Positions 23,733-58,600 of a DNA stretch of 64,000 nucleotides are shown piece after piece. The first letter of the stretch is position 1. Each line of letters starts with the position of its first letter. The position numbers and the translations under genes were made by a program. Under the pieces are notes generated by a model. That model worked only from the letters and a program-made list of their open reading frames with translations, was not told where the DNA came from and searched no databases. Source of the DNA: Marsupella aquatica. Its lineage: Eukaryota > Plantae > Marchantiophyta. The stretch is taken from positions 8,827,832-8,891,831 of the forward strand of contig OZ316897.1 in NCBI GenBank assembly GCA_973895155.1, given 5' to 3'.

Positions 23733-26700
23733 CTAACCGACTGTTTGTGTACAATCATCACCTTGATCCTGATATAGCTCTTTTTCCACGGAAAAACATC
23801 CATCTTCTACTGTGTACCATATCCGCGAACCTCGTCCAATTCTGCTCGGTGCATTTGGTGTCATCAACCATGGTGGCAATGAATTGACAAGATTACGACA
23901 AAAAATGAGCTTTAGTCTTTGCAGTGACGGTAAACTCTTGATGCCGCCTGGAATGCTTGCAACAGAATCAAGGAGAATTTTCAGGTGACGAAGATCCTTC
24001 AAGTCTCCCAAGGAGTTCAGTGTCATGTCCTCAGCCACACGTATCTTCACAAATTGAAGTTTCTTGAGTTGCCGTAAAGATTCGGGCAAAGTGTCCAATG
24101 TGCAATCCATTTTAAGCTCCTCCAAGGCAGCGAGTTGTCCGAAGGTGTCTGGCAAGGTGCGTAATTTGTCGCAGTAGATTAATTCAAGCTGGTTCAAAGA
24201 GGACAGTCCCCCGAATGACTCAGGCAAGGTACTCAAGTTCTCGCAGTTATAAAATGCAAGATGGTTCAAGGAGGACAGTCCCCCGAACGACTCAGGCAAG
24301 GTGCGCAAGTTCTCACAATTCCCAAATCGAAGATGGTTCAAGGAGGACAGTCCCCCGAATGACTCAGGCAAGGTACTCAAGTTCTCGCACTTATAAAATG
24401 CAAGATGGTTCAAGGAGGACAGTCCCCCGAACGACTCAGGCAAGGTGCGCAAGTTCTCGCACACATAAAATGCAAGATGGTTCGAGGAGGACAGTCCCCC
24501 GAACGACTCAGGCAAGGTGCGCAAGTTCTCGCACTCATAAAATTCAAGATGGTTCAAGGAGGACAGTCCCCCGAATGACTCAGGCAAGGTACACAAGTTC
24601 TCGCACTCATTGAATTCAAGATGGTTCAAGGAGGACAGTCCCCCGAATGACTCAGGCAAGGTACGCAAGTTCACGCACGCATAAAATTTAAGATGGTTCA
24701 AGGAGGACAGTCCCCCGAATGAGTCAGGCAAGGTATGCAAGTTCACGCACTCATTGAATTCAAGATGGTTCAAGGAGGACAGTCCCCCGAACGACTCAGG
24801 CAAGGTGCGCAAGTTCTCGCACTCATAAAATTCAAGATGGTTCAAGGAGGACAGTCCCCCGAATGACTCAGGCAAGGTACACAAGTTCTCGCACTCATTG
24901 AATTCAAGATGGTTCAAGGAGGACAGTCCCCCGAACGACTCAGGCAAGGTGCGCAAGTTCTCGCACTCATAAAATTCAAGATGGTTCAAGGAGGACAGTC
25001 CCCCGAATGACTCAGGCAAGGTACACAAGTTCTCGCACTCATTGAATTCAAGATGGTTCAAGGAGGACAGTCCCCCGAATGACTCAGGCAAGGTGCGCAA
25101 GTTCTCACAATTCCGAAATCGAAGATGGTTCAAGGAGGACAGTCCCCCGAATGACTCAGGCAAGGTACTCAAGTTCTCGCACTTAAAAAATTCAAGATAG
25201 TTCAAGGAGGACAGTCCCCCGAATGACTCAGGCAAGGTACGCAAGTTCACGCACGCATAAAATTTAAGATGGTTCAAGGAGGACAGTCCCCCGAATGACT
25301 CAGGCAAGGTACTCAAGTTCTCGCACTCATGAAATTCAAGATCGTTCAAGGAGGACAGTCCCCCGAAGGACTCGGGCAGAGAGGACAATTTCGGACAATC
25401 ATAGAATTCAAGATGGTTCAAGGAGGACAGTCCCCCGAATGACTCAGGCAAGGTACTCAAGTTCTCGCACCTATAAAATTCAAGATGGTTCAAGGAGGAC
25501 AGTCCCCCGAATGACTCAGGCAAGGTACTCAAGTTCTCGCACTCATAAAATTGAAGATGGTTCAAGGTGGACAGTCCCCCGAAGGACTCCGGCAGAGAAT
25601 ACAATTTCGGAGATGATGCTATTACAAGGTGCTGTAAGGAGGACAGTTGCCCAATAGAACTCGGAAGGTGCTCCAAACCTTCTAACTCCAAGTAGGCAAG
25701 ATGACTTTGGAGGGAAGGGTCAAAAAGATTTTGACCAACACATTTGAGTAAAACAAGCTCAGTTGGGAAGGATCCATCTTCCTGAGCTCCATCCATCCTC
25801 ATTGGGACGTTAACTTCCAAGAAACGGAGATTCTTCAGTTTGAGAAGAGCACAGGTTGGAATATTGATCAACAGCTCATCATCGTCATCATCGTCATCAT
25901 CATCACTTGCACTCTCGTCATCATCATCATCATCACTTGCACTCTTGTGCTCCAACCGCAAGGCATACAATTCCTGTAAATAGAAACCACAACTGAGAAT
26001 CAAGAAATCACCTGATACTATTTTATCCCTATCATTGCAAATAAGTAGTTAGACCAGGAAAAATCTGACCTCATCCAGGGTACTCCAGGACCAGGTCCAA
26101 TCCTTCAAATATGCAAGCACAAGCATGGATGTTTGTAGTCTGCTAGTGTGACTGACCTGGAGCTTACCTTTCCATTTAATAGACTTGGAGTTTGTAACAG
26201 CTCCAGACCCTTCTCTCCATCCCAGACCCTCCACTTCCTGGAGTAGCTGGGCTCACACGCAATCTTCCTTCCAAGACTTTGTAGTTGTTCATGTACCTTG
26301 ATTTGCTCATCATCTTTCACGTCATAAACTAGAGACATGTCCACCAAAGTCCCCCAAAGTATCCTTTCAATAGGTGTTTTATAAGCAACCCTCAATACTC
26401 CCAGGACTTTACCCAAAGTCCACTGCCACGACGTGCTGAAAAATGTTGTTACATCCAAAAACATCTGTTGCTCGATTGGTCCCAGACCCTCATAACTAGG
26501 CCTTAGCTTAGCCCAAAGCCTCTCATTCATGTCTTTCACATCCATTGCTTCATCCAAGGCAAGCAAAGTTTGCTTCCAGACATCACAGTTCGATTTCGCT
26601 TTCAGGTACTTCCCAAGAACTTCCAGTGTTAGTGGCAAGCCATCACATTTTCTCACAATGGTTTTCATGATGCTTCCCAACTCTGGCACTGGTACTCCTT

Positions 26701-28739
26701 GACCTGGAAATGCAAAACTTTGGAAAAGTACCATGGCAGCATCGTCTTTGAGGTATGGAACCTCATAGATGTCCCCCCAATGACGTACAAGATTTTGGTC
26801 TCGCGATGTCATAATGAAACGGCTATGTGACCCTGTAAGTTGACCTAATTCTGATAAAATCATGGCATCACGATCAGTAGAGATATCATCTAAACCAAGG
26901 AGCAACTTCTTCCCTTTCAAGTTCTTCCAATCCTCTTCACTTGAGACCTTTCTCCCATGACGATACATCTGACTCCACACTTCTTGTTTCACAGCTTTCT
27001 CATCCCCTTTGATTAGCTTCACATTAAGCACAAAACAAGTATACTCAAATTGTTGGCTCATGCTGTTGAAAATTATCTTGGCAAGGGTGCTTTTGCCCAC
27101 ACCTCCCATTCCCACCAGGCCTAATATTGGAATATTGAACAGCTTCTCGATTATTTCTTCCTTTGGACCATCAATACCAATAATTGAGTCAGGAACAAAT
27201 TGGAAATTCTCAGGAAGTACTGACGTGCCTTGTGCCTGCATTTTAAGAAACAATAGCCAACTGTCAATACCAATTGTATTTTGGGCTTCAAAATACAATC
27301 ATGAAACAGCCTACTTTCCAACTCAATTCAAGATGGCCGCTTGGGCAAAAGGGATGAAAACATCTTACCTTCACGTCACCAACTATTCTGGAGAGAAACG
27401 TCTCTAGCGTATAGAAGCTTCTTTTGGTCTTTGTCATTGGCTTACATATTGTGAAGTGGTCAACTCCATCAACAATATTGAAATTATCTCGTCTTGAAGA
27501 TGCCTCAGGGACTATGAAAACTTCACCTAAGTTTCCCTGCCCAAAACCAACCAACAAATGCAATTGATGAGACCACAATTATGTGAGCCTCTATACTGTG
27601 GCAAAATACTTGAATCCAAATTTGAAGTAATATAAGAGTACTCTTATCATTGTCACTGTCACACATTACTGTTACTACAAATCACTCCATACACTAACGT
27701 TCATTAAACCTCAAGAAGACATGATTGTGAGATTTCGAATTGCAGAGGGACAGCATCTACCAATGTCTCACTTAAACAAAGCACACCACACGGAAGGTAG
27801 TGAGTAGATCTATACCAATCTTGTTGGCATGCTCTCTCCAACTCCCTCCATCTGCAACTTGGGATACATTCTGCATACCCTGTCGAACTTGTGATTCAGC
27901 CTTGCTGCTTCTTTACTCAGAATTTTGAAGTAATCCCGTAGGGGACCGCCACAAAGATCTACTGCTTCCTCTGCAATTGAGCTGCCGTGATGTGGAGTGC
28001 CATAAAAAAATATTCCATTTAGGTTGTTAAGAAAGGTCTGGAGCTTCTCCTTGGTTGGGCCTTTGGTCATACCGAGCAATTCATGGGCTTGGCAGAATAC
28101 TTGCTTAATGACAATGCCCCCAACAGAATGACCAACTAAGATCACCGGACAACCCGGCACTTGCCCAATGTCTGCTTGGAGTAGATCCGAGATGAAGTTT
28201 TCTGCAATGTTGTAGATATCGAAAACACTGTTACGGACACTTTTGCCTACACGCCCATCATATGAAACATACAACACGTGACTGCCTGGGAATTCCTCAA
28301 CCAACCACTCTTGAGGCCACATGCATTTCCCATCCCTGCTTTCCCACGTCCACAAATGTACATTTGTGAAGTTCTGGAATTGCAGCCCATGGAAGAACAA
28401 AAGCTGCATGCTGGCAATGCCCGGCGGTCTGTCAAGCTCATAAAAGGATTCATTTACCTGAGACAAAGGGTCCAAGTAATCAATACTCCCACACAATCTT
28501 GTCATTCAATCCCTCGTTTACATTCAAAGCACAAAATCCCACAGAAGCCAAGACCAGACTAGATCAGGGTCTGGACTGTGCATTACCTCTCGAGCACCTG
28601 CTGTGATTCGCGAAGAAGTAGAAGCTATAGATGTTGTGGTCAATGACGCACGTAGCATGTAGCTCAAGCGTGTGACCCATCGGCTTTTGGAGTTCGCAGG
28701 ATCGTAATAGTTGGCAAGGCCGCGTAGAATGGAAGCCAT
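23733..28739 (-). CDS. NLR-A: alpha/beta-hydrolase-NB-ARC-LRR immune receptor, ~1434 aa, 20 LRR cassettes
   Basis: Exons 28739-28587, 28457-27816, 27536-27369, 27235-26168, 26102-26070 (micro-exon) and 25973-23733, all phase 0. Hydrolase motifs FFHGLQ, WPQEWL, GHSVGG, FYGTPHHGS, DHFTICKP. NB-ARC motifs GMGGVGKS, LLLGLDD, SRFIMTSRD, CDGLPLTL, VHEQL. LRR units LxxLPESFGGLSSLNHLxFxxCxN. Confidence 0.9.
24165..25604 (-). repeat. Coding tandem array of 20 x 72-bp LRR units (NLR-A)
   Basis: Core caagatggttcaaggaggacagtcccccgaa(t/c)gactcaggcaaggt recurs every 72 bp. Confidence 0.97.
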
Positions 28740-29089
28740 GCAGGTAACCGAGTAATTTCGGAGGCTTGCTCTTGATACCGATCAGAGCATGTGCTCGAGA
28801 AGAAACCTGCGCAGCATGAAGAAGGGTTGAGCAGGCTTGTCTTCTCCGGTCCAAAAGGCAGTATGGTCGACCTTAGATGGTGGCCTAAAAGGTGGGACAA
28901 GTTCAATACTTCAAGTGCACATCCGTGAGTAATTCAGTAGTCCCTAGGCGCAAATAGAAATAAAGTACTCTTATCATCTAAATAAAGTACTCTTATCATC
29001 TAATGCGTAGCGTTGCCTGAAACGAGACATAATTTGCTACTAGTGCGTTGGACTAGAAGTTGTCTCATGCTGAAACACGAGACATGACA

Positions 29090-29790
29090 GGTTACACTGC
29101 AAGCCAGGTGCAAATTGCTTTAATGCTCCGTAACATTTAATTCTATCTATTGATATCAAAAGCCTGGAGCACATTTACACGTTCTCCAAACCATTTGATC
29201 AAGACTGTCCACTTAGAGGTCGGAGTTGGAGACCAGAGAAGAGAAACAAAAGCTTCGTGTTTGATGTCCAGAACGAAATCCACTTATGTAGATCTGCACG
29301 AGGGGCAGGAAAGTGAGCATTCAAGCGACATGGACGCTTTGAAGGTATTCAGGTCGTCATTTCGGTTGGTGAATGGAAGTGAGCGAGTCAAAACATTCCA
29401 ACAACCACATGCCATAAGAGAAAATTCAAGGATTTCAAGGGTACACTGCAAGCCAGGCGCAAAGTGCTTTACTGCTCCGTAAGATTTAATTCTATCTATT
29501 GATATCAAAGGCCTGGAGCACATTCACACGTTTTCCAAATCAATCGATCAATACTGTCCACTTAGAGGTAGCAGTTGGAGACCAGAGAAGAGCAACAAAA
29601 GCTTCGTGTTTCATCTCCAGGAACATAAGTCCACTAATTCTAGATCTGGACGAAGGGCAGGAAAGTGAGCATTCAAGCGATATGGAGGCTTTGGAGGTAT
29701 GCAGGTCGTTATACTGGTTGGTGAATGGAGTGAGCGAGTCAAAACATTCCAACAACCACATGCCATAAGAGAAAATTCAAGGATTTCGCC
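29090..29790. repeat. ~350-bp tandem duplication upstream of NLR-A
   Basis: Units begin gg(t/g)tacactgcaagccagg at ~29090 and ~29440; compare ORFs 29150 and 29499. Confidence 0.85.
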
Positions 29791-35039: not shown

Positions 35040-38000
35040 CTAACCGACCTGTTTGTGTACAATCATCACCTTGATCGTCGATATACCTCTATTTCCACGG
35101 AAAAACATCCATCTTCTACTGTGTACCATATCCGCGAACTTCGTCCAATCTGCTCGGTGCATTAGGTGTCATCAACCATGGTGGCAATGAATTGACAAGA
35201 TTATTACGAAACTCGAGCTTTAGTGTTTGCAGTGACGGTGAACTCTTGATGCCGTCTGGAATGCTCCGAATAGAATAAACGAATATTTCCAGGTGACGAA
35301 GATCCTTCAAGTATCCAAATGAGTTCAGTGTCATGTCCTCAGCCACACGTATCTTCACAAATTGAAGTTTCTTGAGTTGCCATAAAGATTCGGGCAAAGT
35401 GTCCAATGTGCAATCCAATTTAAGCTTCTCCAAGGCAGCGAGTTGTCCGAAGCTGTCTGGCAAGGTGCCTAGTTTGTCGCAGAAGCTTAATTCAAGCTGG
35501 TTCAAGGAGGACAGTCCCCCGAATGACTCAGGCAAGGTACGCAAGTTCACGTCTCGCACTCATAAAATTCAAGATGGTTCAAGGAGGACAGTCCCCCGAA
35601 TGACTCATGCAAGGTGTGCAAGTTCTCACAATTCTGAAATCGAAGATGGTTCAAGGAGGACAGTCCCCCGAATGACTCAGGCAAGGTACTCAAGTTCTCG
35701 CACTCATGAAATTCAAGATCGTTCAAGGAGGACAGTCCCCCGAAGGACTCGGGCAGAGAGGACAATTTCGGACAATCATAGAATTCAAGATGGTTCAAGG
35801 AGGACAGTCCCCCGAATGACTCAGGCAAGGTACTCAAGTTCTCGCACTCATAAAATTGAAGATGGTTCAAGGTGGACAGTCCCCCGAAGGACTCCGGCAG
35901 AGAATACAATTTCGGAGATGATGCTATTACAAGGTGCTGTAAGGAGGACAGTTGCCCAATAGAACTCGGAAGGTGCTCCAAACCTTTTAACTCCAAGTAG
36001 GCAAGATGACTTTGGAGGGAAGGGTCAAAAAGATTTAGACCAACACATTTGAGTAAAACAAGCTCAGTTGGGAAGGATCCATCTTCCTGAGCTCCATCCA
36101 TCCTCACTGGGACGTTGACTTCCAAGAACTGTAGATTCTTCAGTCTAGGAAGAGCGTTGCTTGGAATATTGATAGAAACCTCATCATCATTTGCACTCTT
36201 GTGCTCCAACCGCAAGGCATACAATTCCTGTAAATAGAAACCACAACTGAGGATCAATAAATCACCTGATACTATTTTATCCCAATCATTGCAGATACGT
36301 AGTTAGACCAAGAAAAATCTGAGCTCATCAAGGGTACTCCAGGACCAGGTCCAATCCTTCAAATATGCAAGCACAAGCATGCATGTTTGTAGTCTGCTTG
36401 TGACTGACCTGGAGCTTACCTTTCCGTTTAACAGACTTGGAGTTTGTAACAGCTCCAGACCCTTCACTCCATCCCAGACCCTCCACTTCCTGGAGTACCT
36501 GGGCTCACATGCAATCTTCCTTCCAAGACTTTGTAGCTGTTCATGTACCTTGATTAGCTCATCATCTTTCACGTCATAAACTAGAGACATGTCCACCAAA
36601 GTCCCCCAAAGTATCCTTTCAATAGGTGTTTTATAAGCAACCCTCAATACTGCCAGGACTTTCCCCAAAGTCCACCGCCCTGACCTGCTGAAAAATGTTG
36701 TTACATCCAAAAACATCTGTTGCTCTATCGGTCCCAGACCCTCATAACTAGGCCTTAGTTTAGCCCAAAGCCTCCCATTCATGTCTTTCACATCCATTGC
36801 TTCATTCAAGGCAAGCAAAGTTTGCTTCCAGACATCATGGTTTGATTTTGCTTTCAGGTACTTCCCAAGAACTTCCAGTGTTAGAGGCAAGCCATCACAT
36901 TTTCTCACAATGGTTTCCATGATGCCTCCCAACTCTGGCGCTGGTACTCCTTGACCTGGAAATGCAAAACTTTGGAAAAGTACCATGGCAGCATCGTCTT
37001 TGAGGTATGGAACCTCATAGATGTCCCCCCATTGACGTACAAGATTTTGGTCTCGCGATGTCATAATGAAACGGCTATCTGAACCTGTAAGTTGACCTAA
37101 TTCTGATAAAATCATGGCATCACGATCAGTGGAGATATCATCTAAACCAAGGAGCAACTTCTTCCCTCTCAAGTTCTTCCAATTCTCTTCACTTGAGACC
37201 TTTCTCCCATGATGATACATCTGATTCCACACTTCTTGTTTCACAACTTCCTCACCCCCTTTGATTAGCTTCACATTAAGCACAAAACAAGTATACTCAA
37301 ATTGTTGGCCCATGCTGTTGAAAATTGCCTTGGCAAAGGTGGTTTTGCCCACACCTCCCATCCCCACTAGGCCTAATTTTGGACTGTTGACCAGCTTCTT
37401 GATTATTTCTTCCTTCGGACCATCAATACCAATAATTGAGTCAGGAACAAATTGGAAATTCTCAGGAAGTACTGACGTGCCTTGTGCCTGCATTTTATGA
37501 ACAATAGCCAACTGTCAATCCCAATTGTATTTTTAGCTTCAAGAGACAATCATGAAACAGCCTACTTTCCAACCGAATACAAGATGGCTGCTTTGGCACA
37601 AGGGATGAAAACTTCTTACCTTCACGTCCCCAACTATTCTGGAGAGAAACTGCTCTAGCTTATAGAAGCTTCTTTGCTTCTTTGTCATTGGCTTACATAT
37701 TGTGAAGTGGTCCACTCCACCAACAATAATGAAATTATCTCGTCTTGAAGATGCCTCAGGGACGATGAGAACTTCACCTAAGATTCCCTGCCCAAACCCA
37801 ACCAACAAATGCAATTGATCAGACCACAATTATGTGAGCCTCCATAGTGTGGCAAAATACTTGAATTCCAATTTAAAGTAACATAAGAGTGCTCTGTCAT
37901 TGTCACTGTCATAGATTACTGTTACTACAAATGACTCCACACACTAATGTTCATTAAACCTCAAGAAGAAATGATTGTGAGATTTCCAATTGCAGAGGGA

Positions 38001-38995
38001 CAGCGTCTACCAATGTCTCACTTAAACAAAGATTGCTTGCACACCACACGGAAGGTAGTGAGTAGATTTGTACCAATCTTGTTGGCATGCTCTCTCCAAC
38101 TCCCTCAATCTGCAACTTCGGATACATTCCGCATACCCTGTCGAACTTGTGATTCAGCCTTGCTGCTTCTGTACTCAAAATTTTGAAGTAATCCCGTAGG
38201 GGACCGCCACAAAGATCTACTGCTTCCTCTGCAATTGAGCTGCCGTGATGTGGAGTGCCATAGAAAAATATTCCATTTAGGTTGTTAAGAAAGGTCTGGA
38301 GCTTCTCCTTGTTTGGGCCTTTGGCCATACCCAGCATTTCATGGGCTTGGCAGAATACTTGCTTAATGACAATGCCCCCAACAGAATGACCAACTAAGAT
38401 CACCGGACAGCCCGGCACTTGTCCAATATCTGCTTGGAGTAGATCCGAGATGAAGTTTTCAGCAATGTTGTAGATGTCAAAAACACTGTTACAAAAACTT
38501 TTGCCTACACGCCCATCATATGAAACATACAACACGTGACTGCCTGGGAATTTTCCAACCAACCACTCTTGAGGCCACATGCATTTCCCATCCCCGCTTT
38601 CCCACGTCGACAAATGTACATTTGTGAAGTTCTGGAATTGCAGCCCATGGAAGAACAAAAGCTGCATGCTGGCGTTGCCCGGCGGTCTGTCAAGCTCACA
38701 AAAGGATTCATTTACCTGAGACAAAAGGGTCCAAGTAATCAATACTCCCACACAATCTTGTCATTCAATCCCTCGTTTACATTCAAAGCACAAAATCCCA
38801 CAGACGCCAAGACCAGACTAGATCAGGGTCTGCACCGTGGACCTCTCGAGCACCTGCTGTCATTCGCGAAGAAGTAGAAGCTATAGATGTTGTGGTCACT
38901 GACGCACGTAGCATGTAGCTCAAGCGTGTGACCCATCGGCTTTTGGAGTTCGCAGGATCGTAATAGTTGGCAAGGCCGCGTAGAATGGAAGCCAT
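35040..38995 (-). pseudogene. NLR-B: hydrolase-NB-ARC-LRR with a frameshifted, contracted LRR (6 cassettes); pseudogene or truncated receptor
   Basis: Exons 38995-38843, 38715-38074, 37787-37620 and 37487-36420 are intact. The LRR exon from 36227 has +5 nt at ~35550 giving TGA at 35547, plus a further 1-nt loss near 35150. The micro-exon donor is GT>CT (36323). Confidence 0.8.
35473..35909 (-). repeat. 6 x 72-bp LRR units plus 5 extra nt (NLR-B)
   Basis: Span is 437 = 6x72+5. Confidence 0.9.
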
Positions 38996-41742
38996 GCAGG
39001 CAACCGAGTAATTTCGGAGGCTTGCTCTTGATACCGATCAGAGCATGTGCTCGAGAAGAAACCTGCGCAGCATGAAGAAGGGTTGAGCAGGCTGGTCTTC
39101 TCCGGTCCATAAGGCAGTATGGTCGACCTTAGATGGTGGCCTAAAACCTGGGACTATGTTCAATCCTTCAAGTGCACATCCGTGAGTAATTCAGTTGTCC
39201 CTGGGCGCAAATAGAAAGAAAGTAATCTTATCATCTAATGCATAGCGTTGCCTGAAACGAGACATAAGTTGCTACTAGTGCGTTGGACTAGAAGTTGTCT
39301 CATGCTGAAACACGAGACATGAAAAGGGAAACAGGGTACGCTGCAAGCCAGGTGCAAATTGCTTTAATGCTCCGTAACATTTAATTCTATCTATTGATAT
39401 CAAAAGCCTGGAGCACATTCACACGTTCTCCGAACCATTCGATCAAGACTGTCCACTTAGAGGTCGCAGTTGGAGACCAGAGAAGAGAAACAAAAGCTTC
39501 GTGTTTGATGTCCAGAACGTAAATCCACTTATGTAGATTTGGACGAGGGGCAGGAAAGTGAGCATTCAAGCGACATGGAGGCTTTGAAGGTATTCAGGTC
39601 GTCATTTCGGTTGGTGAATGGAAGTGACCGAGTCAACACATCCCAACAACCACATGCCATAAGACAAAAATTCAAGGATTTCGCCATAGGACTTACAATT
39701 AGGCGAAAAAAGGGTGAGTGATACAGAAGTCCACGGAAGCGCTTCTGCAGATATCAGCTTTCCGATTCCAGGAACCGACGCAGCCGAGGCTCAAAGTTTG
39801 TTGACGAAGATGAGTAAACTTACACGGCTACCACTGCGAAAAATTGGGTTCCTCCTGCAGAAATTCACAAAAGTACATATGCAGATGATCCCTCCGAGAG
39901 TCCAGGAATCGAAAGGCGGCAATTTTCACAACTCGTGGGTAAAGAGGCTTCCTTGTTGGAACAGAGCAGTGCTCATGGGATGACGAGGCGAAGGACTATT
40001 GCGCACATCTGCTGAGAGAAGAAACTGATCGCTGCTATCAATCAGTAAACGGATCAACAACAATCGTCACATACCATGAAATTGAAGTGAGTCAATGGAT
40101 GGTACTATGGTAGACCTAGAAAGACACCAACCTGAAGAGAGAAAACAAGATCGAGCCACCCCACAAACCTCACCACTGCGCATAAACGGGTCGGCAAGCT
40201 ACCTCTCAAAATGCAAGGTTGAGAGTCAGAAAGCAGGTTTTAGCACAGTAGACTCTGCCGACGGAATTTCTAACAATGGGCCGACAGATCTGCTCCTGGG
40301 AGCTCAAGGAGTCAACAAACAAGATGAGGAGGGTCCAACCTCGAGAGAGTCGCTTTGCTGAGCAAGCATTGTACAGCACTCGGCCAGTATACACAGAGCA
40401 AAAAGCTTGGTAAGTGGCGAGGAAGGAATCTCCTTTGACATCTGTGAACATGGGACGAGGGGGGGCCCATTGGGAAGACAACTATGTCGCGTTTTGACAA
40501 AAATGACAAAGCTACACATCTGCACCGTCTATTGTAAACATTAAAAAACGGCTCGCATGTGTGTTTAACTCTTCCTCGTGTTCCCCTGCTAGAACTTTGG
40601 CCGACGTCATCCTACTGCAGAGTAACAATTTCTTCTTATTACTTCCTCACCTTGAGTGTTCTTAAGTCAGCGGTGTTCGCTTTTCACTCTAGCTCCAGTA
40701 TTTGTCCTCGGCAGTGTGACTCGTCAACACTACTCTGTAGTACATAATTTAGGGGTGTGAATTTGGTATGTTTCTCTGTAACGTAGAGGACGCAAACCGA
40801 CTGTTGCTGGGGTCCGACGAATTGGCATGTGAGAGTTTTCTGCCCTTTGAAAATCCAAGTCCAATTTTTATTTCAGGGGCATCAGTCCGGGTTTCGCACG
40901 TCTACCATGGAAATTTCGCTGCTTGATTGACTTAGTTCTACTCTCCATATGTGACCGAGGCCTACTTCTCATTCTCCGGGTAATACCTGAAGATCCTGTG
41001 GCAAGCTTCATATTCGGAAGCTGGATCGAATGGCAGATGCTTTTCGCACAGCACTTGAGAGCGTGTGTAGCCCATAAATCCAGGACTTCCCTGCTCGATT
41101 AATCTGGTAGAATGACTTATTAGCAATCTTCGTCAGTCGTTACCCTAGGAGCCGTTTCGATCCCCACTTAGATTTTTACAGTTCTAGGACAAATGTTACG
41201 GCTAAGGCACTGGTGTTTTGAGCTCAATAATCTTATTTAGATCATCATCACAGAAATAGTTGAATTTCACGTCGCTAAACATTCTGTCCAGCTGTTCGAA
41301 AGCCACACCGCCATCTATGGCAGTTCTTGTCTTTCCCTTACCCCGAAGCTTTTGGCCAGCAATCGAAATGTTTTCCCGGAGTGCTTGAAATCCAAGTTTG
41401 GGAGTGTTTGGCCAGCAGCACGGGTAGTGAACACTCGATCCTTCTACAAACTTTGAAAGCTACGAAGACGGGATAATCCTGCAGTTTTGGCACTGAAACG
41501 AAACCAAAACTATTGAACTGTGACCATATTGTAGGATGAAGTTGGAACGCGTTAGAGGACTAATCTACTGAGACTGGGTGACGTAGAAGTGCACTGCCGA
41601 GGAGTGGACAGAAGAAAACTGCACAGCCAATTGAACAAAATAGTAATATGGAAACGAGAACAAAGGCGAAAACTCAAGGTGGCTCGACAACTATTCTACA
41701 CTGGGAAAAATGTCGCCAAGGAGAAAGGTGTGACTCGCCTAC

Positions 41743-45814: not shown

Positions 45815-48800
45815 TCAATAATATTCCTCGTTTTCCACGGAAAAACAACCATGGTCTATAGTGTATGATATCCATGAACCTCGTTCAATTGTGCTCGCTG
45901 CATTAGGTGTCATCAACCATGGTGGCAATGAATTAACAAGATTACGACGAAAATTGAGGTTTAGTGTTTGCAGTGACGGTGAACTCTTGATGCCGTCTAG
46001 AATGCTCGGAATAGAATAAACGAGTATTTCCAGGTGACGAAGATCCTTCAAGTGTCCCAATGAGTTCAGTGTCATGTCCTCAGCCACACGTATCTTCAAA
46101 AATTGAAGTTTCTTGAGTTGCCCGAAAGAATCGGGCAAAGTGTCCAATGTCCAAACCATTTCAAGCTTCTCCAAGGCAGCGAGTTGCACGAAGGTGTCTG
46201 GCAAGGTGCGTAATTTGCCGCAGTAGATTAATTCAAGCTGGTTCAAAGAGGACAGTCCCCCGAATGACTCAGGCAAGGTGCGCAAGTTCTCACAATTCCG
46301 AAATCGAAGATGGTTCAAGGAGGACAGTCCCCCGAATGACTCAGGCAAGGTACTCAAGTTCTCGCACTTAAAAAATTCAAGATAGTTCAAGGAGGACAGT
46401 CCCCCGAATGACTCAGGCAAGGTACGCAAGTTCACGCACGCATAAAATTTAAGATGGTTCAAGGAGGACAGTCCCCCGAATGACTCAGGCAAGGTACGCA
46501 AGTTCACGCACTCATTGAATTCAAGATGGTTCAAGGAGGACAGTCCCCCGAATGACTCAGGCAAGGTACTCAAGTTCACGCACTCATTAAATTCAAGATG
46601 GTTCAAGGAGGACAGTCCCCCGAATGACTCAGGCAAGGTACGCAAGTTCACGCACGCATAAAATTTAAGATGGTTCAAGGAGGACAGTCCCCCGAATGAG
46701 TCAGGCAAGGTATGCAAGTTCACGCACTCATTGAATTCAAGATGGTTCAAGGAGGACAGTCCCCCGAATGACTCAGGCAAGGTAGGCAAGTTCACGCACT
46801 CATTAAATTCAAGATGGTTCAAGGAGGACAGTCCCCCGAATGACTCAGGCAAGGTACGCAAGTTCACGCACGCATAAAATTTAAGATGGTTCAAGGAGGA
46901 CAGTCCCCCGAAGGACTCAGGCAAGGTACGCAAGTTCTCGCACGTAATAAGTTCAAGATGGTTCAAGGAGGAAAGTCCACCGAAAGACTCAGGCAAGGTG
47001 CGCAAGTTCTCACATTTCCAGAATCGAAGATGGTTCAAGGAGGACAGTCCCCCGAAGGACTCGGGCAGAGAAGACAATTTTGGAGATGATACTATCACAA
47101 GGTGCTGTAAGGAGGACAGTTGCCCAATAGAACTCGGAAGGTGCTCCAAACCTTTTAACTCCAAGTAGGCAAGATGACTTTGGAGGGAAGGGTCAAAAAG
47201 ATTTTGACCAACACATCTGAGTAAAACAAGCTCAGTTGGGAAGGATCCATCTTCCTGAGCTCCATCCATCCTCATTGGGACGTTAACTTCCAAGAAACGG
47301 AGATTCTTCAGTTTGAGAAGAGCACAGGTTGGAATATTGATCAACAGCTCATCATCGTCATCATCGTCATCATCATCACTTGCACTCTCGTCATCATCAT
47401 CATCATCACTTGCACTCTTGTGCTCCAACCGCAAGGCATACAATTCCTGTAAATAGAAACCACAACTGAGAATCAATAAATCACTTGATACTATTTGATC
47501 TCAATCAATGCAAATAAGTACAGTAGTTAGACCAGGAAAAATCTGAGCTCATCAAGGGTACTCCAGGACCATGTCCAATCCTTCAAATATGCAAGCACAA
47601 GCATGGATGTTTGTAGTCTGCTAGTCTGTTTGACCTGGAGCTTACCTTTCCGTTTAATAGACTTGGAGTTTGTAACATCTCCAGACCCTTCACTCCATCC
47701 CAGACCCTGCACTTCCTGGAGTAGCTGGGCTCACATGCAATCTTCCTTCCGAGACTTTGTAGCTGTTCATGTACCTTGATCGGTTCATGGTCTTCCACCT
47801 CATAAACAAGAGACATGTCCACCAAAGTCCCCCAAAGTAGCCTTTCAGTAGTTGTTTTATAAGCAGCCCTCAATGCTACCAGGGCGTCACCCAAAGTCCA
47901 CTTGCGAGTCCACCTCCAAGACGTGCTGAAAAATGTTGTTACATCCAAAAACATCTGTTGCTCTATTGGTCCCAGACCCTCATAACTGGGCCTTAGCTTA
48001 GCCCAAAGCCTCTCATTCATGCCTTTCACATCCATTGCTTCATCCAAGGCAAGCAAAGTTTGCTTCCAGACATCACGGTTTGATTTTGCTTTCAGGTACT
48101 TCCCAAGAACTTCCAGTGTTAGAGGCAGGCCATCACATTTTTTCACAATGGTTTCCATGATGCCTCCCAACTCTGGCGCTGGTACTCCTTGACCTGGAAA
48201 TGCAAAACTCTGGAACAGTACCATGGCAGCATCATCTTTGAGGTATGGCACCTCATAGATGTCCCCCCAATGACGTACAAGATTTTGGTCTCGCGATGTC
48301 ATAATGAAACGGCTATCTGGACCTGTAAGTTGACCTAATTCTGATAAAATCATGGCATCACGATCCGTAGAGATATCATCTAAACCAAGGAGCAACTTCT
48401 TCCCTCTCAAGTTCTCCCAATCCTCTTCACTTGAGACCTGTCTCCCATGATGATACATCTGATTCCACACTTCTTGTGTCACAACTTCCTCACCCCCTTT
48501 GATTAGCTTCACATTAAGCACAAAACAAGTATACTCAAATTGTTGGCCCATGCTGTTGAAAATTACCTTGGCAAGGGTGGTTTTGCCCACACCTCCCATC
48601 CCCACTAGGCCTAATTTTGGACTGTTCACCAGCTTCTCGATTATTTCTTCCTTCGGACCATCAATACCAATAATTGAGTCAGGAACAAATTGGAAATTGT
48701 CAGGAAGTACTGACGTGCCTTGTGTCTGCATTTTATGAACAATAGCCATCTGTCAATACCAATTGTAATTTTGGCTTGAAGAGACAATCATGAAACACCC

Positions 48801-49025: not shown

Positions 49026-51263
49026 CTGCACAAACCCAACCAACAAATGCAATTGATCGGACCACAATTATGTCAGCCTCCATATTGTGGCAAAATACTT
49101 GAATCCAAATTTAAAGTAACATAAGACTACTCTTATCATTGTCACTGTCGCAAGTTACTGTTACTACAAATGACTCACAAATTACTGTTACTACAAATTA
49201 CTGTTACTACAAATTACTCAAGAAGAAAGGATTGTGAGATTTCCAATTGCAGAATCAAAAGCACCTACCCATGTCTCACTTAAACAACGATTGCTTGCAC
49301 GAGAAGAAACCTGCGCAGCATGAAGAAGGGTTGAGCAGGCTTGTCTTCTCCGGTCCAAAAGGCAGTACGGTCGACCTTAGATGGTGGCCTAAAAGGTCGG
49401 ACAATGTTCAATCCTTCAAGTGCACATCCGTGAGTAATCAGCTGTCCCTGGGCGCAAATAGAAAGAAAGTAATCTTATCATCTAATGCATAGCGTTGCCT
49501 GAAACGAGACATAATTTGCTACTAGAACGTTGGACTAGAAGTTGTCTCGTGCTGAAACACGAGACATGACAGGGTACACTGCAAGCCAGGCGCAAAGTGC
49601 TTTACTGCTCCGTAAGATTTAATTCTATCTATTGAAATCAAAAGCCTGGAGCACATTTACACGTTCTCCAAATCAATCGATCAAGACTGTCCACTTAGAG
49701 GTAGCAGTTGGAGACCAGAGAAGAGCAACAAAAGCTTCGTGTTTCATCTCCAGGAACATAAGTCCAATAATTCTAGATCTGGACGAGGGGCAGGAAAGTG
49801 AGCATTCAAGCGATATGGAGGCTTTGGAGGTATGCAGGTAGTTATACTGGTTGGTGAATGGAGTGAGCGAGTCAAAACATTCCAACAACCACATGCCATA
49901 AGAGAAAATTCAAGGATTTCGCCATAGAACTTACCACTAGGCGAAAAAAGGGTGAGTGATACAGAAGTCCACGAAAGCGCTTCTGCAGATATCAGCTTTC
50001 CGATTCCAGGAACCAACGCAGCCGAGGCTCAAAGTTTGTTCACGAAGAGCAGCGCATTTTGAACGGAGAATCTGACCTGGATGAAGGGGTTCACAGAACT
50101 TCTCCGTCACTAATTGATCTGTTGATAATAGAGACGCGAAACGAAAGCCTGTTTGTCATGTCGCAGAAGATGATCAATGATCGAGGTCCTCGACATTTGG
50201 AAGAAAGGAAAAACAGTGATCGACCTTTGATGGGTCGGACGCGATGCAAAGGAGTTAACAATAATCTCGAAATAAAGGTGGGTGATGTTGGAGTGAGCCA
50301 GTGGATGCGTTTGGTATAACCCCAGCCAGAAGATGGAGAAGATGAGTAAACTCACTAGGATACCACTGCGAAGGATTGGGTTCCTGCTGCAGAAATTCAC
50401 AAAAGGACATATGCAGATGATCGAAAGGCGGCAATATTCACAACTCGTGGGTAACGAGGCTTCCTTGTTGGAACAGAGCAGTGCTCATGGGATGACGAGG
50501 CGAAGGACGATTGCGCACATCTGCTGAGAGAAGAAACTGATCGCTGCTATCAATCAGTAAACGGATCAACAACAATCGTCAAATCCCGTGAAATTGAAGT
50601 GAGTCAACGGATGGTATTATGGTAGACCTAGAAAGAAACCAGCCTGAAGAGAGAAAACAAGAGCCACCCCACAAAGCTCACCACTGGGCATAAACGGGTC
50701 GGCAAGCTACCTCAAAAAATGGAAGGTTGAGAGTCAGAAAGCAGGCTTTAGCACAGTAAAGTCTGCGATGGAAATTTCTTACAACGGAGTGCTGATAGAT
50801 CTGCTCCTTGGAGCCCAACGAGTCAACAAATAAGACGAGGAAGGTCCAACCTCAAGAGTGTCGCTTTCGCTGAGCAAGTAATATACAGCATTCGGCCAGT
50901 ATACACAGAGCAAAGCTTGGCAAGTGGCGAGGGAGTAATCTCCTTTGGAATCTGTGAACATGGGACGAGGGGGGCCCCATTCGTGAGACGACTATGTTGC
51001 GTTTCGACTACAAGGCTATACATCTGCACCGTCTATTGTAAACATTAAAAAATGGCTCATGCCTCTCGTATGTGCTTTACTCTTCCTCGTGTTCCCCTGC
51101 TGGAACTTTGGCCGACGTCATCCTACTCCAGAATAACAATTCCTATTTATTACTTCCTCGCCTTGAGTAAACTTAAGCGGTGTGCGCTTTTCTCTCCTGC
51201 TCCAGTATTTGTCCTCGACAGTGCGACTCGTCAACAGTAATCCAGAGATTCTAATTTTGGATC

Positions 51264-52095
51264 TGAAAATTGTCTTGGCAAGGGTGGTTTTTCCCACACC
51301 TCCCATGCTCGCTAGGCCTAATTTTGGAATATTGACCAGCATCTGGATTATTTCTTCCTTTGGACCATCAATACCAATAATTGAGTCAGGAATAAATTGG
51401 AATTTCTCAGGAAGTTCTGACGTGCCTTGTACCTGCATTTTATGAACAATACCCAACTGTCAATACCAATTTTATTTTTGGCTTCAAAACACAATCATGA
51501 AACTGCCTACTTTCCAATTGAAATGTAGATGGCTGCTTTGGCACAAGGGATGAAAACAATTTACCTTCACATCACCAACTATTCTGGAGAGAAACTCCTC
51601 TAGCTTATAGAAGCTTATGTTGGTCTTTGTCATTGGCTTACATATTGTGAAGTGGTCTCCATTAACAATATTGAAATTATAGCGTCTTGAAGATGGTTCA
51701 GGCACTGTGAAAATTTCACCTAAGTTTCCCTGCACAAACCCAACCAACAAATGCAATTGATCAGACCACAATTATGTCAGCCTCCATATTGTGGCAAAAT
51801 ACTTGAATCCAAATTTAAAGTAACGTAAGAGTACACTTCTCGTTGTCACTGTCACAAATTTCTGTTACCAAATGAGTCCATGCACTAATGTTCATTCAAC
51901 CTCAAGAAGAAATGATTGTGAGATTTCCAATTGCAGAGGGACAGCATTTACCAATATCTCACTTAAACAAAGCACACCACACGGAAGGTAGTGAGTAGAT
52001 CTGTACCAATCTTGTTGGCATGCTCTCTCCAACTACCTCAATCTGCAACTTGGGATACATTCTGCATACCCTGTGAAAATTGTGATTCAGCCTTG
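51264..52095 (-). pseudogene. NLR-D fragment: end of the hydrolase exon, the DHFTICKP exon and the start of NB-ARC up to the P-loop
   Basis: RLNHNFHRVCRMYPKLQIEVVGESMPTRL / GNLGEIFTVPEPSSRR...DHFTICKP / ...SMGGVGKTTLAKTIF, then an abrupt join to the NLR-C upstream flank. Confidence 0.88.
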
Positions 52096-53135
52096 ATAAG
52101 GTCACTCCCGAGTCATTGCGATTTTTCTCTCCTCTAGTTTTGTGGACTAAACCGCCAACTGATAACGTTGGCAAATTTTATACCCTGCTTTCCAAGACTA
52201 CCTTCAGGTACGTGCTTCTTGAAAACTTTGGTGGAAATAAGTGCTTGATCCATCCTGACAAGTCAGATTCACTCTTGGAAGAGACAGATCATCTTTCCTA
52301 CAAGGCTCTCATTAAATTTTCGCGCGTGCAGGCCTGGCTGAATATGGTCGACTCAGCTCAGCCGGCCGTTGATCCCGTAGCGATTGCCAAGAATCAAGAA
52401 GCCCAGCATCGTTATATTTCCTGGCGAAACCACCAAGGTTAATGTTCCTTTCAGAATCGTAGGAGACAGTGGTTCTCAGAAATTGAACACGAGCGCTTAC
52501 TGCTTTTAGACTGCCTTCCATATTATGCTAGTCTGAAATTTGTGGCAGGACACGATTGTTGGTGAAGAACGGACTAACGTGCAATTTGGTATACTTGTGG
52601 ATTGGTTTAGGATCCAGGGCGGCCAGTACTTACAAAGCTGTTTGGGGAGCAGTTGGCTGAGGTAAGCTTTGTTTAGCATGTTGTTCATTTTCAAGATAGT
52701 AAATCATGGAGGGATGTTTTGTTAAATTCTTTAGCTCATGTGCAACTCTCGTAAATGCTACATATCGACTTCAGGTTGAGACATTTTTAAACTATGACAG
52801 AAACTACAAGGAGGGAGGTTTAATTTGTGCTTTTTTCGTATGAGAAGCCCTTCAATCCCGAGTGATGTTAATCTGTACAGGATTTCAATCTTGATTAATT
52901 GAGACTCGCCCTCTCTTCCTGAGAATTAAATGAGGCGAGTGCTGGGTCTGGTTGGGTTTTGCAGAGTTATATCAAGGAATTCCTGTTCAATGGCCACAGC
53001 ACCTTGGGAACAAAATCCTTCCTGGATTACTTCCCTGAATATAGAGGTGAGGACGGGAGCATGTACAAACAACGGAGTATGACTGGCAAGTCATTTGAGG
53101 CAAGACCGTGGGACAAAGATGGCAATTTTCTCTAA
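52094..53135 (+). pseudogene. HY2: Decayed 3' half of HY2 (last four exons)
   Basis: Copy of ~20082-21122 starting mid-exon (gataaggtcactcccgag). It has a 1-nt deletion (aaattttataccc, ~52177) and a 1-nt insertion (tggcgaaaccacc, ~52428). Confidence 0.9.
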
Positions 53136-55613: not shown

Positions 55614-58600
55614 TCATCGATATACCTCTTTTTCCACGGAAAAACATCCATCATCTACTGTGTACGATATCCGCGAACCTCGTCTAATTCTGCTCGGTGC
55701 ATTAGGTGTCATCAACCATGGTGGCAATGAATTGACAAAATTACAACGAAAATCGAGCTCTAGTCTTTGCAGTGACGGTAAACTCTTGATGCACTCTGGA
55801 ATGCTTACAACAGAATCAAAGGCAATTTCCCCTTGACGAAGATCCTTCAAGTCTCCAAATGTGTTCAGTGTCATGTCCTCGTTCACAAGTATCGTCACAA
55901 ATTGAAGTTTCTTGAGTTGCCGTAAAGATTCGGGCAAAGTGTACAATGTGCAATCCATTTCAAGCTTCTCCAAGGCAGCGAGTTGTCCGAAGGTGTCTGG
56001 TAAGGTGCGTAATTTTCCGCAGCAGGTTAATTTAAGCTGGTTCAAGGAGAACAGTCCCCCGAAGGACTCAGGCAAGGTGCGCAAGTTCTCACACCAATGC
56101 AATTCAAGATGGTTCAAGGACAGTCCCCCGAAGGACTCAGGCAAGGTGCGCAAGTTGTCACACCCATACAATTCAAGATGGTCCAAGGAGGATAGTCCCA
56201 CGAAGGACTCAGGCAAGGTGCGCAAGTTCTCACAATTCCAGAACCGAAGATGGTTCAAGGAGGACAGTTCCCCGAATGACTCAGGCAAGCTGTGCAAGGT
56301 CGTACACTTCCTGAACTCAAGATAGTTCAAGGAGGACAGTCCCCCGAATGACTCAGGCAAGGTGCGCAAGTGCTCACAATACCGCAATCGAAGATAGTTC
56401 AAGGAGGAAAGTCCACCGAAAGACTCAGGCAAGGTGCGCAAGTCCCTACATATCTGGAATTCAAGATGGTTCAAGGAGGACAGTCCCCCGAAGGACTCAG
56501 GCAAGGTGCGCAAGTTCATACACCACTTGAATTTAAGATGGTTCAAGGAGGACAGTCCACCGAAAGACTCAGGCAAGGTGCGCAAGTCGCTACATATCTC
56601 GAATTCAAGATGGTTCAAGGAGGACAGTCCCCCGAATGACTCAGGCAAGCTGTGCAAGTTCTTACAATCATAGAATGCAAGATCGTTCAAGCAGGACAGT
56701 CCCCCGAAGGACTCAGGCAAGGTGCGCAAGCTCGTACAACTCGAGAATCGAAGATGGTTCAAGGAGGACAGTCCCCCGAAGGACTCAGGCAAGGTGCGCA
56801 AGTTCTCACATCCCCTGAATTTAAGATGGTTCAAGGAGGACAGTCCCCCAAAGGACTCGGGCAGAGAAGACAATTTTGGAGATGATGCTATTACAAGGTG
56901 CTGTAAGGAGGACAGTTGCCCAATAGAACTCGGAAGGTGCTCCAAACCTTCTAACTCCAAGGAGGCAAGATGACTTTGGAGGGAAGGGTTAAAAAGGTTT
57001 TGACCAACACATTTGAGTAAAACAAGCTCAGTTGGGAAGGATCCATCTTCCTGAGCTCCATCCATCCTCACTGGGACGTTGGCTTCCAAGAAGTGCAGAT
57101 TCTTCAGTCTAGGAAGAGCGTTGCTTGGAATATTTATAGAAGCCTCATGATAATATGCACTCTCGTCCTCCTCCAACCGCAAGGCATACAATTCCTGTAA
57201 ATAGAAACCACAACTGAGAATCAAGAAATCACCTGATACTATTTTATCCCTATCATTGCAAATAAGTAGTTAGACCAGGAAAAATCTGACCTCATCAATG
57301 GTACTCCAGGACCAGGTCCAATCCTTCAAATATGCAAGCACAAGCATGGATGTTTGTAGTCTGCTAGTGTGACTGACTTGGAGCTTACCTTTCCATTTAA
57401 CAGACTTGGAGTTTGTAACAGCTCCAGACCCTTCACTCCATCCCAGACCCTCCACTTCCTGGAGTAGCTGGGCTCACATGCAATCTTCCTTCCAAGACTT
57501 TGTAGCTGTTCATGTACCTTGATTACCTCATCATCTTTCACGTCATAAACTAGAGACATGTCCACCAAAGTACCCCAAAGTATCCTTTCAATAGGTGTTT
57601 TATAAGCAACCCTCAATACTCCCAGGACTTTACCCAAAGTCCACTGCCACGACGTGCTGAAAAATGTTGTTACATCCAAAAACATCTGTTGCTCGATTGG
57701 TCCCAGACCCTCATAACTAAGCCTTAGCTTAGCCCAAAGCCTCTCATTCATGTCTTTCACATCCATTGCTTCATCCAAGGCAAGCAAAGTTTGCTTCCAG
57801 ACATCACGGTTCGATTTCGCTTTCAGGTACTTCCCGAGAACTTCCAGTGTTAGAGGCAAGCCATCACATTTTCTCACAATGGTTTCCATGATGCCTCCCA
57901 ACTCTGGCGCTGGTACTCCTTGACCTGGAAATGCAAAACTTTGGAAAAGTTCCATGGCAGCATCTTCTTTGAGGTATGGAACCTCATAGATGTCCCCCCA
58001 ATGATGGACAAGATTTTGGTCTCGCGATGTCATAATGAAACGGCTATCTGGACCTGTAAGTTGACCTAATTCTGATAAAATCATGGCATCACGATCCGTA
58101 GAGATATCATCTAAACCAAGGAGCAACTTCTTCCCTCTCAAGTTCTTCCAATCCTCTTCACTTGAGACCTTTCTCCCATGATGATACATCTGATTCCACA
58201 CTTCTTGTTTCACAACTTCCTCACCCCCTTTGATTAGCTTCACATTAAGCACAAAACAAGTATACTGAAATTGTTGGCCCATGCTGTTGAAAATTGCCTT
58301 GGCAAGGGTGGTTTTGCCCACACCTCCCATTCCCACCAGGCCTAATTTTGGACTGTTGACCAGCTTCTCTTTTATTTCTTCCTTCGGACCATCCATACCA
58401 ATGACAGAGTCAGGTACAAATTGGAAATTCTCAGGAAGTTCTGACGTGCCTTGTGCCTGCATTTTATGAACAATAGCCAACTGTCAATCCCAATTGTATT
58501 TTTAGCTTCAAGAGACAATCATGAAACAGCCTGCTTTCCAACTGAATACAAGATGGCTGCTTTGGCACAAGGGATGAAAACTTCTTACCTTCACGTCCTC

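Follow-up and report, generated by a model that had tools for sequence, protein, structure and literature searches.

The window analysed here, a 64,000-nucleotide stretch of the genome of the liverwort Marsupella aquatica, carries on its minus strand four tandem genes that are predicted from their sequence to encode alpha/beta-hydrolase–NB-ARC–LRR receptors (HNL, or Hyd-NLR), a class typical of liverworts. The cluster lies within 36 kb and consists of an intact gene with 20 regular LRR units (A), an intact gene with 12 units (E) and two damaged copies (B and C); the paralogs sit in tandem segmental duplicates of ~10.5 kb each. The genes and their parts are as follows (positions are those of the window).

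23733..28505, minus strand: gene A, apparently intact HNL gene in four ORF blocks, with an uninterrupted ORF through the complete array
27810-28505, minus strand: gene A, hydrolase exon 1 (ORF)
within 27288-27578, minus strand: gene A, hydrolase exon 2 (ORF)
26105-27298, minus strand: gene A, NB-ARC (ORF; Pfam NB-ARC, E=1e-29)
23733-26003, minus strand: gene A, LRR (ORF; LRR_14, E=2e-81)
35116..38751, minus strand: gene B, HNL copy with a broken LRR frame, ORFs split at 35547-36257 and 35116-35559
45815..48749, minus strand: gene C, NB-ARC-LRR copy without hydrolase exon 1
51118..52095, minus strand: fragment D, hydrolase/NB-ARC junction remnant of a fifth copy, without an LRR array
55614..59721, minus strand: gene E, apparently intact HNL copy with an uninterrupted ORF through the complete array
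58924-59721, 57326-58480 and 55614-57224, minus strand: gene E, hydrolase exon 1, NB-ARC and LRR blocks, respectively

A central NB-ARC domain is present in A, B, C and E (PF00931, E=1e-28 to 1e-29), and a C-terminal LRR domain is recognized by PF23598 (E=2e-81 in A, 4e-51 in C and 3e-42 in E). Pfam scores for the hydrolase fall below threshold (Abhydrolase_6, E=4e-4; Cutinase, PGAP1, DUF676 and Lipase_3 weaker). The hydrolase exon contains a GHSVGG nucleophile-elbow motif, and that of gene A shares 50% identity over 213 aa with the N-terminal part of Calypogeia protein P0002, which carries PF05057; the NB-ARC of gene A is 46% identical to the same protein. The N-terminal alpha/beta-hydrolase domain that characterizes HNL genes thus appears to be present despite the sub-threshold scores, albeit not in gene C, where ~1 kb matching positions 27800-28800 of A is absent (the alignment has no C columns there). 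The four ORF blocks stand in the expected order and, as read from the ORFs, are compatible with the conserved layout of HNL genes, in which one intron interrupts the hydrolase domain, a second separates it from the NBS and a third lies between the NBS and the LRR region (Xue et al. 2012; PMC3352924). The frame of gene B is broken by a 5-bp insertion after unit 5, which leads to an in-frame TGA. Fragment D matches positions 27067-27904 of A in blastn (90%) and has a Pfam NB-ARC hit of E=7e-5 in its ORF at 51118-51456. A homologue search with the 756-aa LRR ORF retrieved no near-identical protein among its relatives (≤1323 aa), the best match being 49% identical. A look for transcripts yielded no RNA run that contains the locus.

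The LRR regions contain tandem arrays of 72-bp units. Tandem Repeats Finder placed them at 24151-25594 (20.1 copies, 87% matches), 35489-35899 (5.6 copies), 46230-47067 (11.6 copies) and 56029-56863 (11.6 copies); the unit register was then set by anchoring on the core, which gave 20 regular units in A, 6 in B and 12 each in C and E. These counts, which come from one assembly, reproduce those of an initial annotation made on the same assembly.

24165..25604, minus strand: array A, 20 units (unit 1 at 25533-25604, unit 20 at 24165-24236)
35473..35909, minus strand: array B, 6 units, with 5 extra bases (35545-35549) between units 5 and 6
46214..47077, minus strand: array C, 12 units, with a three-unit higher-order repeat (C3-5 / C6-8)
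56013..56873, minus strand: array E, 12 units, more diverged, the faces private to this array; 3 bp are deleted in frame from unit 11

A single degenerate LRR stands at either end of each array. The units are 24-residue LRRs with a common invariant core of about 42-45 bp: nucleotides 7-51 are nearly constant, in keeping with the core length proposed initially, and the exceptions within this stretch are third-position variation at Ser7 (pi 0.59) and Pro5 (0.23) and first-position variation at His16 (0.26). Pairwise amino-acid identity of units averages 82% (A), 81% (C), 73% (B) and 70% (E), and neighbouring units of A8-A17 share 89-96% of their nucleotides. Scanning both strands of the window for the core motif revealed no orphan cassettes outside the four arrays. 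Logan contigs of four sequencing runs, placed on positions 23000-26600, contain three joints (skips of 432, 876 and 151 bp) with a short side of 22-29 letters, which possibly derive from paralogous arrays and are uninformative on copy number.

Four or more residue types occur only at codons 2, 16, 18, 20, 21, 23 and 24. In an AlphaFold2 model of the gene E LRR ORF, which is a solenoid with pLDDT >90 across the array, the beta-strand corresponds to unit positions 16-20; the seven variable codons would thus lie in or beside the concave beta-sheet, the presumed ligand-binding face, as had been supposed when variation was first described as confined to exposed positions. Changes counted on the unit tree were 113 nonsynonymous to 15 synonymous at the face codons and 17 to 29 in the scaffold (Fisher p=7e-11). 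The expectation of a dN/dS above one only at exposed sites was borne out in direction, with values of at least 1 for the face codons and ~0.2 for the scaffold, but the excess is modest when the face's own silent sites are the yardstick (pairwise pN/pS 1.0-1.3, as against 1.6-2.2 relative to array-wide pS) and none of the seven codons is individually significant. Diversifying selection is nevertheless likely to act on the concave face.

Units are held in common both within and between arrays. Eight sets of 72-mers are identical (A1=B1, A3=B2, A4=B3, A6=C10, A7=C11, A13=C6, A9=A11=A15 and C4=C7), A5 and C9 are one nucleotide apart, and the stretch C9-C11 differs from A5-A7 at one position in 216 nt. 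Array A contains 144-bp double-unit repeats (A8-9, A10-11 and A14-15), and units within A8-A15 and within C3-C9 are separated by 0-3 differences. Identical units occupy different positions in A, B and C. The faces of E are private (FRGC, FSSC, FEIC, FKWC, FQIC, LRYC, FRKC, LYGC and LHWC), with even the closest non-E unit differing at 6 or more of the 72 nt, and so are its silent states: Cys22 is TGT in 11 of the 12 units, all Phe19 codons are TTC and all Arg2 codons CGC. All cassette identities listed in the initial annotation, as well as its almost private face set for E, were recovered in this comparison.

On a tree of all units those of A, B and C interleave, and the labels of A and B are no less scattered than shuffled labels; E units partly cluster, so that the interleaving of paralogs expected at the outset holds for three of the arrays. 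First units and last units each form a clade of their own (98-99% SH-aLRT), suggesting that positional homology has been kept at the array edges, as unequal crossover would give. Silent changes on the tree include 12 at the third position of Ser7 and 8 at codon 2, both homoplasious. As the tree is driven by the face codons, the 12 changes at Ser7 imply that left and right halves of units have recombined inside the core. The possibility that the variable block is far older than the core, raised by the pooled silent diversity of Phe19 and Cys22 (pi 0.46-0.60), was discarded: most of this diversity comes from sites fixed for one state in E and another in A/B/C, amounting to 2-3 changes on the tree.

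Silent divergence within the core (pS, codons 8-17) is 0.006-0.036 in A, B and C, that is, 3 to 17 times below the divergence between the paralogs (pS 0.06-0.11 in the NB-ARC exons). In E it is 0.11, approximately the paralog level, which suggests that homogenisation in this array has been weak or is old. The claim that the core is conserved even at synonymous sites therefore applies to A, B and C but not to E.

The flanks of the arrays, which diverge by 3-10% between paralogs, are mosaic. Informative sites support different groupings blockwise: upstream of the array 48 of 62 sites favour AC|BE, and downstream 44 of 50 favour AE|BC. The topology switches 18 times along the 112 sites, a value matched by none of 20000 shuffles. 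Two tracts stand out:

25802..25936, minus strand: tract suggestive of conversion, directly upstream of array A, in which 14 consecutive informative sites group A with C
38000..41000, minus strand (E ~59000-62000): near-identical B/E tract of ~3 kb with 10 differing positions, in surroundings that are 4-6% diverged; it spans hydrolase exon 1 and upstream DNA

We consider it probable that this liverwort HNL cluster has been shaped by concerted evolution through unequal crossover and gene conversion, combined with diversifying selection on the face. The near-identical 42-45-bp core would be the substrate of homologous recombination: whole units would be gained, lost and reordered by in-register unequal crossover or slippage, while short conversion tracts and crossovers between paralogs would pass units and flanks from gene to gene and keep the core uniform. 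Selection would maintain or drive differences at the seven face codons, which may bind ligands in what are presumably immune receptors, and turnover of the arrays may be ongoing as well as past. The process would be evolutionary and germline, a by-product of the repeat architecture exploited by selection. The initial annotation had also proposed concerted evolution, with exchange both inside a gene and from one paralog to another, and the shared units, mosaic flanks, B/E tract and low core pS agree with it. The further notion of a dedicated diversification system goes beyond the observations, which correspond to ordinary homologous recombination in a near-identical tandem array.

Alternatively, the arrays might stem only from a recent burst, in which one or a few units were amplified and their faces then diverged under positive selection, without continuing homogenisation or exchange between paralogs. 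The units of A8-A15 and C3-C9 are indeed clearly young duplications, and in E both the paralog-level core pS and the silent states common to its units (TGT, TTC, CGC) are as expected from amplification in place. A burst alone is nonetheless unlikely, given that identical 72-mers occur at different positions in paralogs whose flanks have diverged, that Ser7 and codon 2 are homoplasious, that the flanks are blockwise mosaics accompanied by a near-identical B/E tract, and that core pS in A, B and C is far under paralog pS.

Repeat mis-assembly as the source of the unit numbers and orders appears very unlikely. None of the arrays is crossed from end to end by a read or contig, Logan contigs reach at most 214 nt, and some bins of array A have zero depth (three runs); against this, the four unit orders are distinct and internally consistent, ORFs remain open through A, C and E, the cassette sequences were found at ≥99% in four runs under two organism labels, and a comparable array exists in Calypogeia. 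It is also highly improbable that the core is kept by selection on DNA or RNA rather than by recombination, for instance as a small-RNA target through which many NLRs are co-regulated. In seed plants, miRNAs directed against conserved coding motifs co-regulate NLRs, and silent sites of codons 8-17 are nearly constant across the 38 units of A, B and C. However, the core of E drifts at the paralog rate, and in Calypogeia the arrays are built on two invariant scaffolds whose nucleotide sequences differ, so that no common target sequence is conserved.

Programmed or somatic cassette assembly, with the broken copies B and C as donor banks from which A or E would be rebuilt in the manner of lamprey VLRs, is hardly credible: the resemblance is limited to near-identical scaffolds, shuffled faces and pseudogene-like neighbours holding units of the intact gene, together with the haploid and clonal liverwort thallus, in which mitotic events would be heritable, whereas A and E are complete in-frame genes, the core motif is confined to the four arrays, the spacers of the window are free of ORFs of ≥120 aa and of candidates for a recombinase or deaminase, and the shared identical units give no direction of transfer. 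Lamprey and hagfish VLR genes do share with this cluster conserved-scaffold LRR modules with variable concave faces, recombined via short stretches of identity. Their assembly, however, depends on a germline gene that is incomplete, on banks of partial cassettes beside it and on AID-like deaminases, and it is somatic, taking place in lymphocytes; in the window, A and E are complete, and neither cassette banks nor, in the spacers, a deaminase candidate were found. Donor cassettes and somatic rebuilding, both suggested in the initial annotation, accordingly find no support.

The likeness to fungal HET-D/E-type arrays drawn there is, on the other hand, apt. In the fungal NLRs of high internal conservation (HIC), such as Podospora HET-D/HET-E/NWD with their WD40 arrays, and in those with ANK or TPR arrays (PMC1805685, PMC4986451, PMC12222747, PMC13449251), the sensor of an NB-ARC/NACHT receptor likewise consists of near-identical tandem repeats that vary at few surface positions under positive selection and differ in number. 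Unequal crossover and conversion shuffle these repeats inside a gene and among paralogs, and many copies are inactive. The surface-limited variation (113/15 against 17/29), the differing unit counts and the units shared among A, B and C follow this pattern. Dyrka et al. (2014) defined HIC repeats as >85% identical at the amino-acid level over ≥100 aa, a cut-off that lies above the whole-array mean unit identities of 70-82% found here. The present arrays also differ in consisting of 24-aa LRRs instead of WD40, ANK or TPR repeats, in the alpha/beta-hydrolase N-terminus of the receptors and in that there is no RIP.

Tomato Cf-2/Cf-5 and RPP5 are classic plant cases of uniform LRR arrays; Cf proteins are extracellular receptor-like proteins. 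Cf-2/Cf-5 and the arrays of other plant R genes (RPP5, flax L/M) resemble those described here in their runs of nearly identical 24-residue LRRs, partly of two alternating types as in A8-A15, in copy numbers that vary among paralogs or alleles, in intragenic and intergenic unequal recombination within a tandem cluster, and in hypervariable solvent-exposed residues. RPP5 (Noel et al. 1999, as cited in PMC13449251) and L are angiosperm TIR-NLRs with less uniform repeats, whereas the HNL arrays have a silent-site-conserved core over up to 20 units. NLRs of high internal conservation have also been reported in plants (PMC13449251), and the contrast with plants first drawn for this locus was overstated. 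The liverwort HNL or Hyd-NLR genes described by Xue et al. (2012; PMC3352924) and Chia et al. (2024; PMC11218826) have the same order of hydrolase, NB-ARC and LRR domains, and their layout of four exons and three introns is one that the ORF blocks here would fit; the nearest relatives of the present genes are liverwort NLRs; near-identical LRR arrays or cassette sharing were not found described in the accessible portions of these two papers.

The cluster is thus a plant instance of a known route of receptor evolution and reveals no new mechanism. It places in the little-studied, liverwort-specific HNL class a repeat architecture familiar above all from the HET-type NLRs of fungi and tomato Cf-2/Cf-5, and supports the view that uniform repeats with hypervariable faces arose repeatedly for fast evolution of recognition. 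It also offers a compact test case for array turnover, conversion-tract length and selection in a haploid clonal plant. The liverwort body is haploid and clonally propagated from an apical cell, so that mitotic exchange within arrays would pass to gemmae and gametes. It is conceivable, albeit a long shot, that liverwort Hyd-NLRs as a class carry fungal-style HIC LRR arrays as contingency loci, altered by mitotic unequal sister-chromatid exchange; a single clone could then make new receptor faces at a measurable rate, blurring the line between somatic and germline. An NLR of Calypogeia fissa has the same design: its unit, 144 bp long, is present in 6.3 copies, varies at the same codons and recurs in identical form at different positions.

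The four tandem NLR paralogs A, B, C and E, all on the minus strand, appear from sequence similarity to belong to the hydrolase-NBS-LRR (HNL or Hyd-NLR) class. When the exons were searched singly and unjoined, NB-ARC and LRR far exceeded the Pfam thresholds and the hydrolase exon gave only sub-threshold matches (Abhydrolase_6, Cutinase, PGAP1, DUF676 and Lipase_3). Even so, 213 residues of the latter exon align at 50% identity with the N-terminus of a protein from Calypogeia fissa annotated as DUF676 + NB-ARC + LRR, with which the NB-ARC exon shares 46% identity. Among proteins of up to 1323 aa, the best-matching relatives of the LRR ORF are NLRs of the liverworts Calypogeia, Marchantia and Riccia (identity ≤49%). 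The HNL class was first described from Marchantia, with three conserved introns located within the hydrolase domain, before the NBS and after the NBS (PMC3352924), and responses resembling cell death are elicited in Nicotiana benthamiana by two of the hydrolase domains from Marchantia (PMC11218826). The genes, the remnant of a fifth copy (D) and the repeat arrays detected by Tandem Repeats Finder are located as follows.

23733–28505, minus strand: gene A, apparently intact, 20 units
24151–25594, minus strand: array A, 72-bp period, 20.1 copies
35489–35899, minus strand: array B, 72-bp period, 5.6 copies
46230–47067, minus strand: array C, 72-bp period, 11.6 copies
~51118–52095, minus strand: fragment D, only part of the hydrolase/NB-ARC junction kept
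55614–59721, minus strand: gene E, apparently intact, 12 units
56029–56863, minus strand: array E, 72-bp period, 11.6 copies

Unit 11 of E has lost 3 bp in frame, gene C is without hydrolase exon 1, and gene B carries 5 bp inserted after unit 5, resulting in an in-frame TGA. This insertion (35545–35549, at the unit 5/6 boundary) resembles a hybrid of the unit endings GAGAAC and GTGAAC, and imprecise recombination may have left it behind as a scar. In A (25876–25945) and C (47349–47418), the NB-ARC domain is separated from the LRRs by an acidic poly-Asp/Ser linker, whose coding sequence reads on the plus strand as a TCA-type trinucleotide run; the region is shorter in B and E.

Comparison of the window with itself revealed that the arrays are embedded in four tandem segmental duplicates of ~10–11 kb each. 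All four arrays are coding on the minus strand, are bordered on either side by one degenerate LRR and, when anchored on the conserved core in this one assembly, contain 20, 6, 12 and 12 regular 24-codon units (A, B, C and E, respectively) with the consensus L-x-T-L-P-E-S-F-G-G-L-S-S-L-N-H-L-x-F-x-x-C-x-N. Per-column diversity shows nucleotides 7–51 of the unit to be near-invariant except at position 3 of the Ser7 and Pro5 codons and position 1 of the His16 codon. Only codons 2, 16, 18, 20, 21, 23 and 24, hereafter the face, show at least four residue types; the other 17 codons form the scaffold. Mean amino-acid identity across the units is 70–82%, slightly under the >85% cut-off applied to the repeats of fungal HIC NLRs. 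The array feature is real and cleanly organised. Public runs carrying DNA of the window were available as Logan contigs, which reach ≤214 nt on the array stretch; cassette sequences are present in four runs with two organism labels, and a search for RNA runs with this DNA found none. Within 24150–25261, X1, X2 and X4 contigs (X2 and X4 being of organism B) join non-adjacent unit boundaries of array A, skipping 432, 876 and 151 bp with only 22–29 letters on the short side; these joints may reflect units ordered differently in other samples, or be paralog-derived.

The recurrence of cassettes at different positions, pointed out in the initial annotation, was borne out. Identical 72-mers are shared between arrays (A1=B1, A3=B2, A4=B3, A6=C10, A7=C11 and A13=C6) as well as within them (A9=A11=A15; C4=C7), A5 and C9 differ by a single base, and the faces of E are private to it. 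Differences among the arrays can be expressed as in-register duplications and deletions. Array B roughly corresponds to A1, A3 and A4 followed by one unit resembling A7/A18, one resembling A9 and a terminal unit; C contains a three-unit repeat (C3–5, C6–8), then the A5-6-7 block and the terminal unit; and A holds double-unit repeats of 144 bp. Since codon 2 of the next unit is tightly linked to the preceding face, the natural cassette comprises codons 16–24 plus the following codons 1–4, with the invariant core as its boundary, in agreement with the bounds originally drawn.

As had also been anticipated, units interleave in the unit tree without strict clustering by gene: labels of A and B are no less scattered than after shuffling, those of C are borderline, and those of E show partial clustering (5 changes versus a shuffled mean of 10.8). 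Positional homology is retained at the array edges, because the first units of the four arrays group in one clade and the last units in another (SH-aLRT 98–99%); this fits the expectation for unequal crossover. Silent divergence between paralogous NB-ARC exons is 0.06–0.11. The values for core codons 8–17 of different units are 0.012 (within A), 0.11 (within E), 0.006 (A versus B) and 0.036 (A versus C), so that the core has been homogenised, or is very young, in A, B and C; this does not hold for E. The latter array has silent states of its own (TGT for Cys22 in 11 of 12 units, TTC for all Phe19 and CGC for all Arg2), despite which the faces of its units are all different. On the face-driven tree, 12 changes fall at the silent third position of the core codon Ser7, which indicates that crossovers inside the core recombine left and right unit halves.

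The array flanks are a recombination mosaic. Upstream of the array, A groups with C at 48 of 62 informative sites, with a 14-site A+C run close to the array (25936–25802), and downstream with E at 44 of 50; the 18 pattern switches in these 112 sites were equalled in none of 20000 shuffles. Furthermore, B (38000–41000) and E (~59000–62000) show 10 differences in ~3 kb, with 4–6% divergence on both sides. This tract, which spans hydrolase exon 1 and upstream DNA and takes in the likely promoter, suggests that a conversion or duplication took place very recently.

In the AlphaFold2 model of the E LRR ORF (pLDDT >90 over the array, strict 24-residue period), a short helix occupies unit positions 6–10 and the beta-strand positions 16–20, so that variable residues 16, 18 and 20 are predicted to face outward from the strand; directly after it come residues 21, 23 and 24 and residue 2 of the next unit. 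Counted on the unit tree, nonsynonymous versus synonymous changes are 113 versus 15 at the seven face codons and 17 versus 29 at the scaffold codons, giving dN/dS of 1.44 and 0.20 (Fisher p=7e-11), although such counts assume a tree, an assumption broken by recombination; pairwise estimates are concordant. Codons 2, 18, 20, 21 and 23 reach 1.8–4.1 times the array-wide silent rate. The expectation that dN/dS would exceed 1 at exposed codons only was upheld for the face as a whole, but the excess is modest and no codon reaches significance alone, which is a signature, not proof, of face-limited diversifying or relaxed selection. Between paralogs, the irregular LRRs after the arrays (23733–24164 and the paralogous tails) have pN/pS of 0.9–1.7; therefore, the non-repetitive C-terminal LRR part evolves fast too.

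A new or programmed diversification system is not supported: a core-motif scan found no LRR units outside the four arrays in the window, the spacers contain no ORF of at least 120 aa, and genes A and E are complete. Nor did the suggestion that broken copies act as donors gain ground, as identical units show sharing but give no direction of transfer. Ordinary processes of unequal crossover and gene conversion within the tandem cluster of NLRs, combined with diversifying selection on the concave LRR face, offer the best explanation of the array feature.

Similar organisation is found in the Calypogeia fissa NLR P0004 (GCA_965154635.1, locus L001, 6548–7459), where a two-LRR unit of 144 bp is present in 6.3 copies, scaffolds are invariant including silent sites, the same seven codons vary and identical units, such as 5 and 11, occupy different positions. 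At 1.3 kb downstream of this gene there is an ORF for a Ty3-type RT/integrase. The classic plant case is tomato Cf-2/Cf-5, with alternating near-identical 24-residue LRRs and copy-number change. Fungal HIC NLRs are defined by near-identical repeats, hypervariable positions, repeat-number polymorphism and inter-paralog shuffling (PMC1805685; PMC4986451; PMC12222747); a 2026 survey reported HIC NLRs in plants too, and a role of repeat shuffling in shaping plant NLR families such as RPP5 (PMC13449251). The Marsupella arrays are the liverwort HNL version of this already known repeat-array design.

Elsewhere in the window, a 597-aa ORF (2423–4216, plus strand) has no Pfam match at E ≤1. An inverted duplication of 3.9 kb (8734–12653 and 14592–18513; 96% identity) surrounds a ~2-kb centre with abundant tandem repeats, whose periods are 137, 45 and 33 bp (12934–14108).
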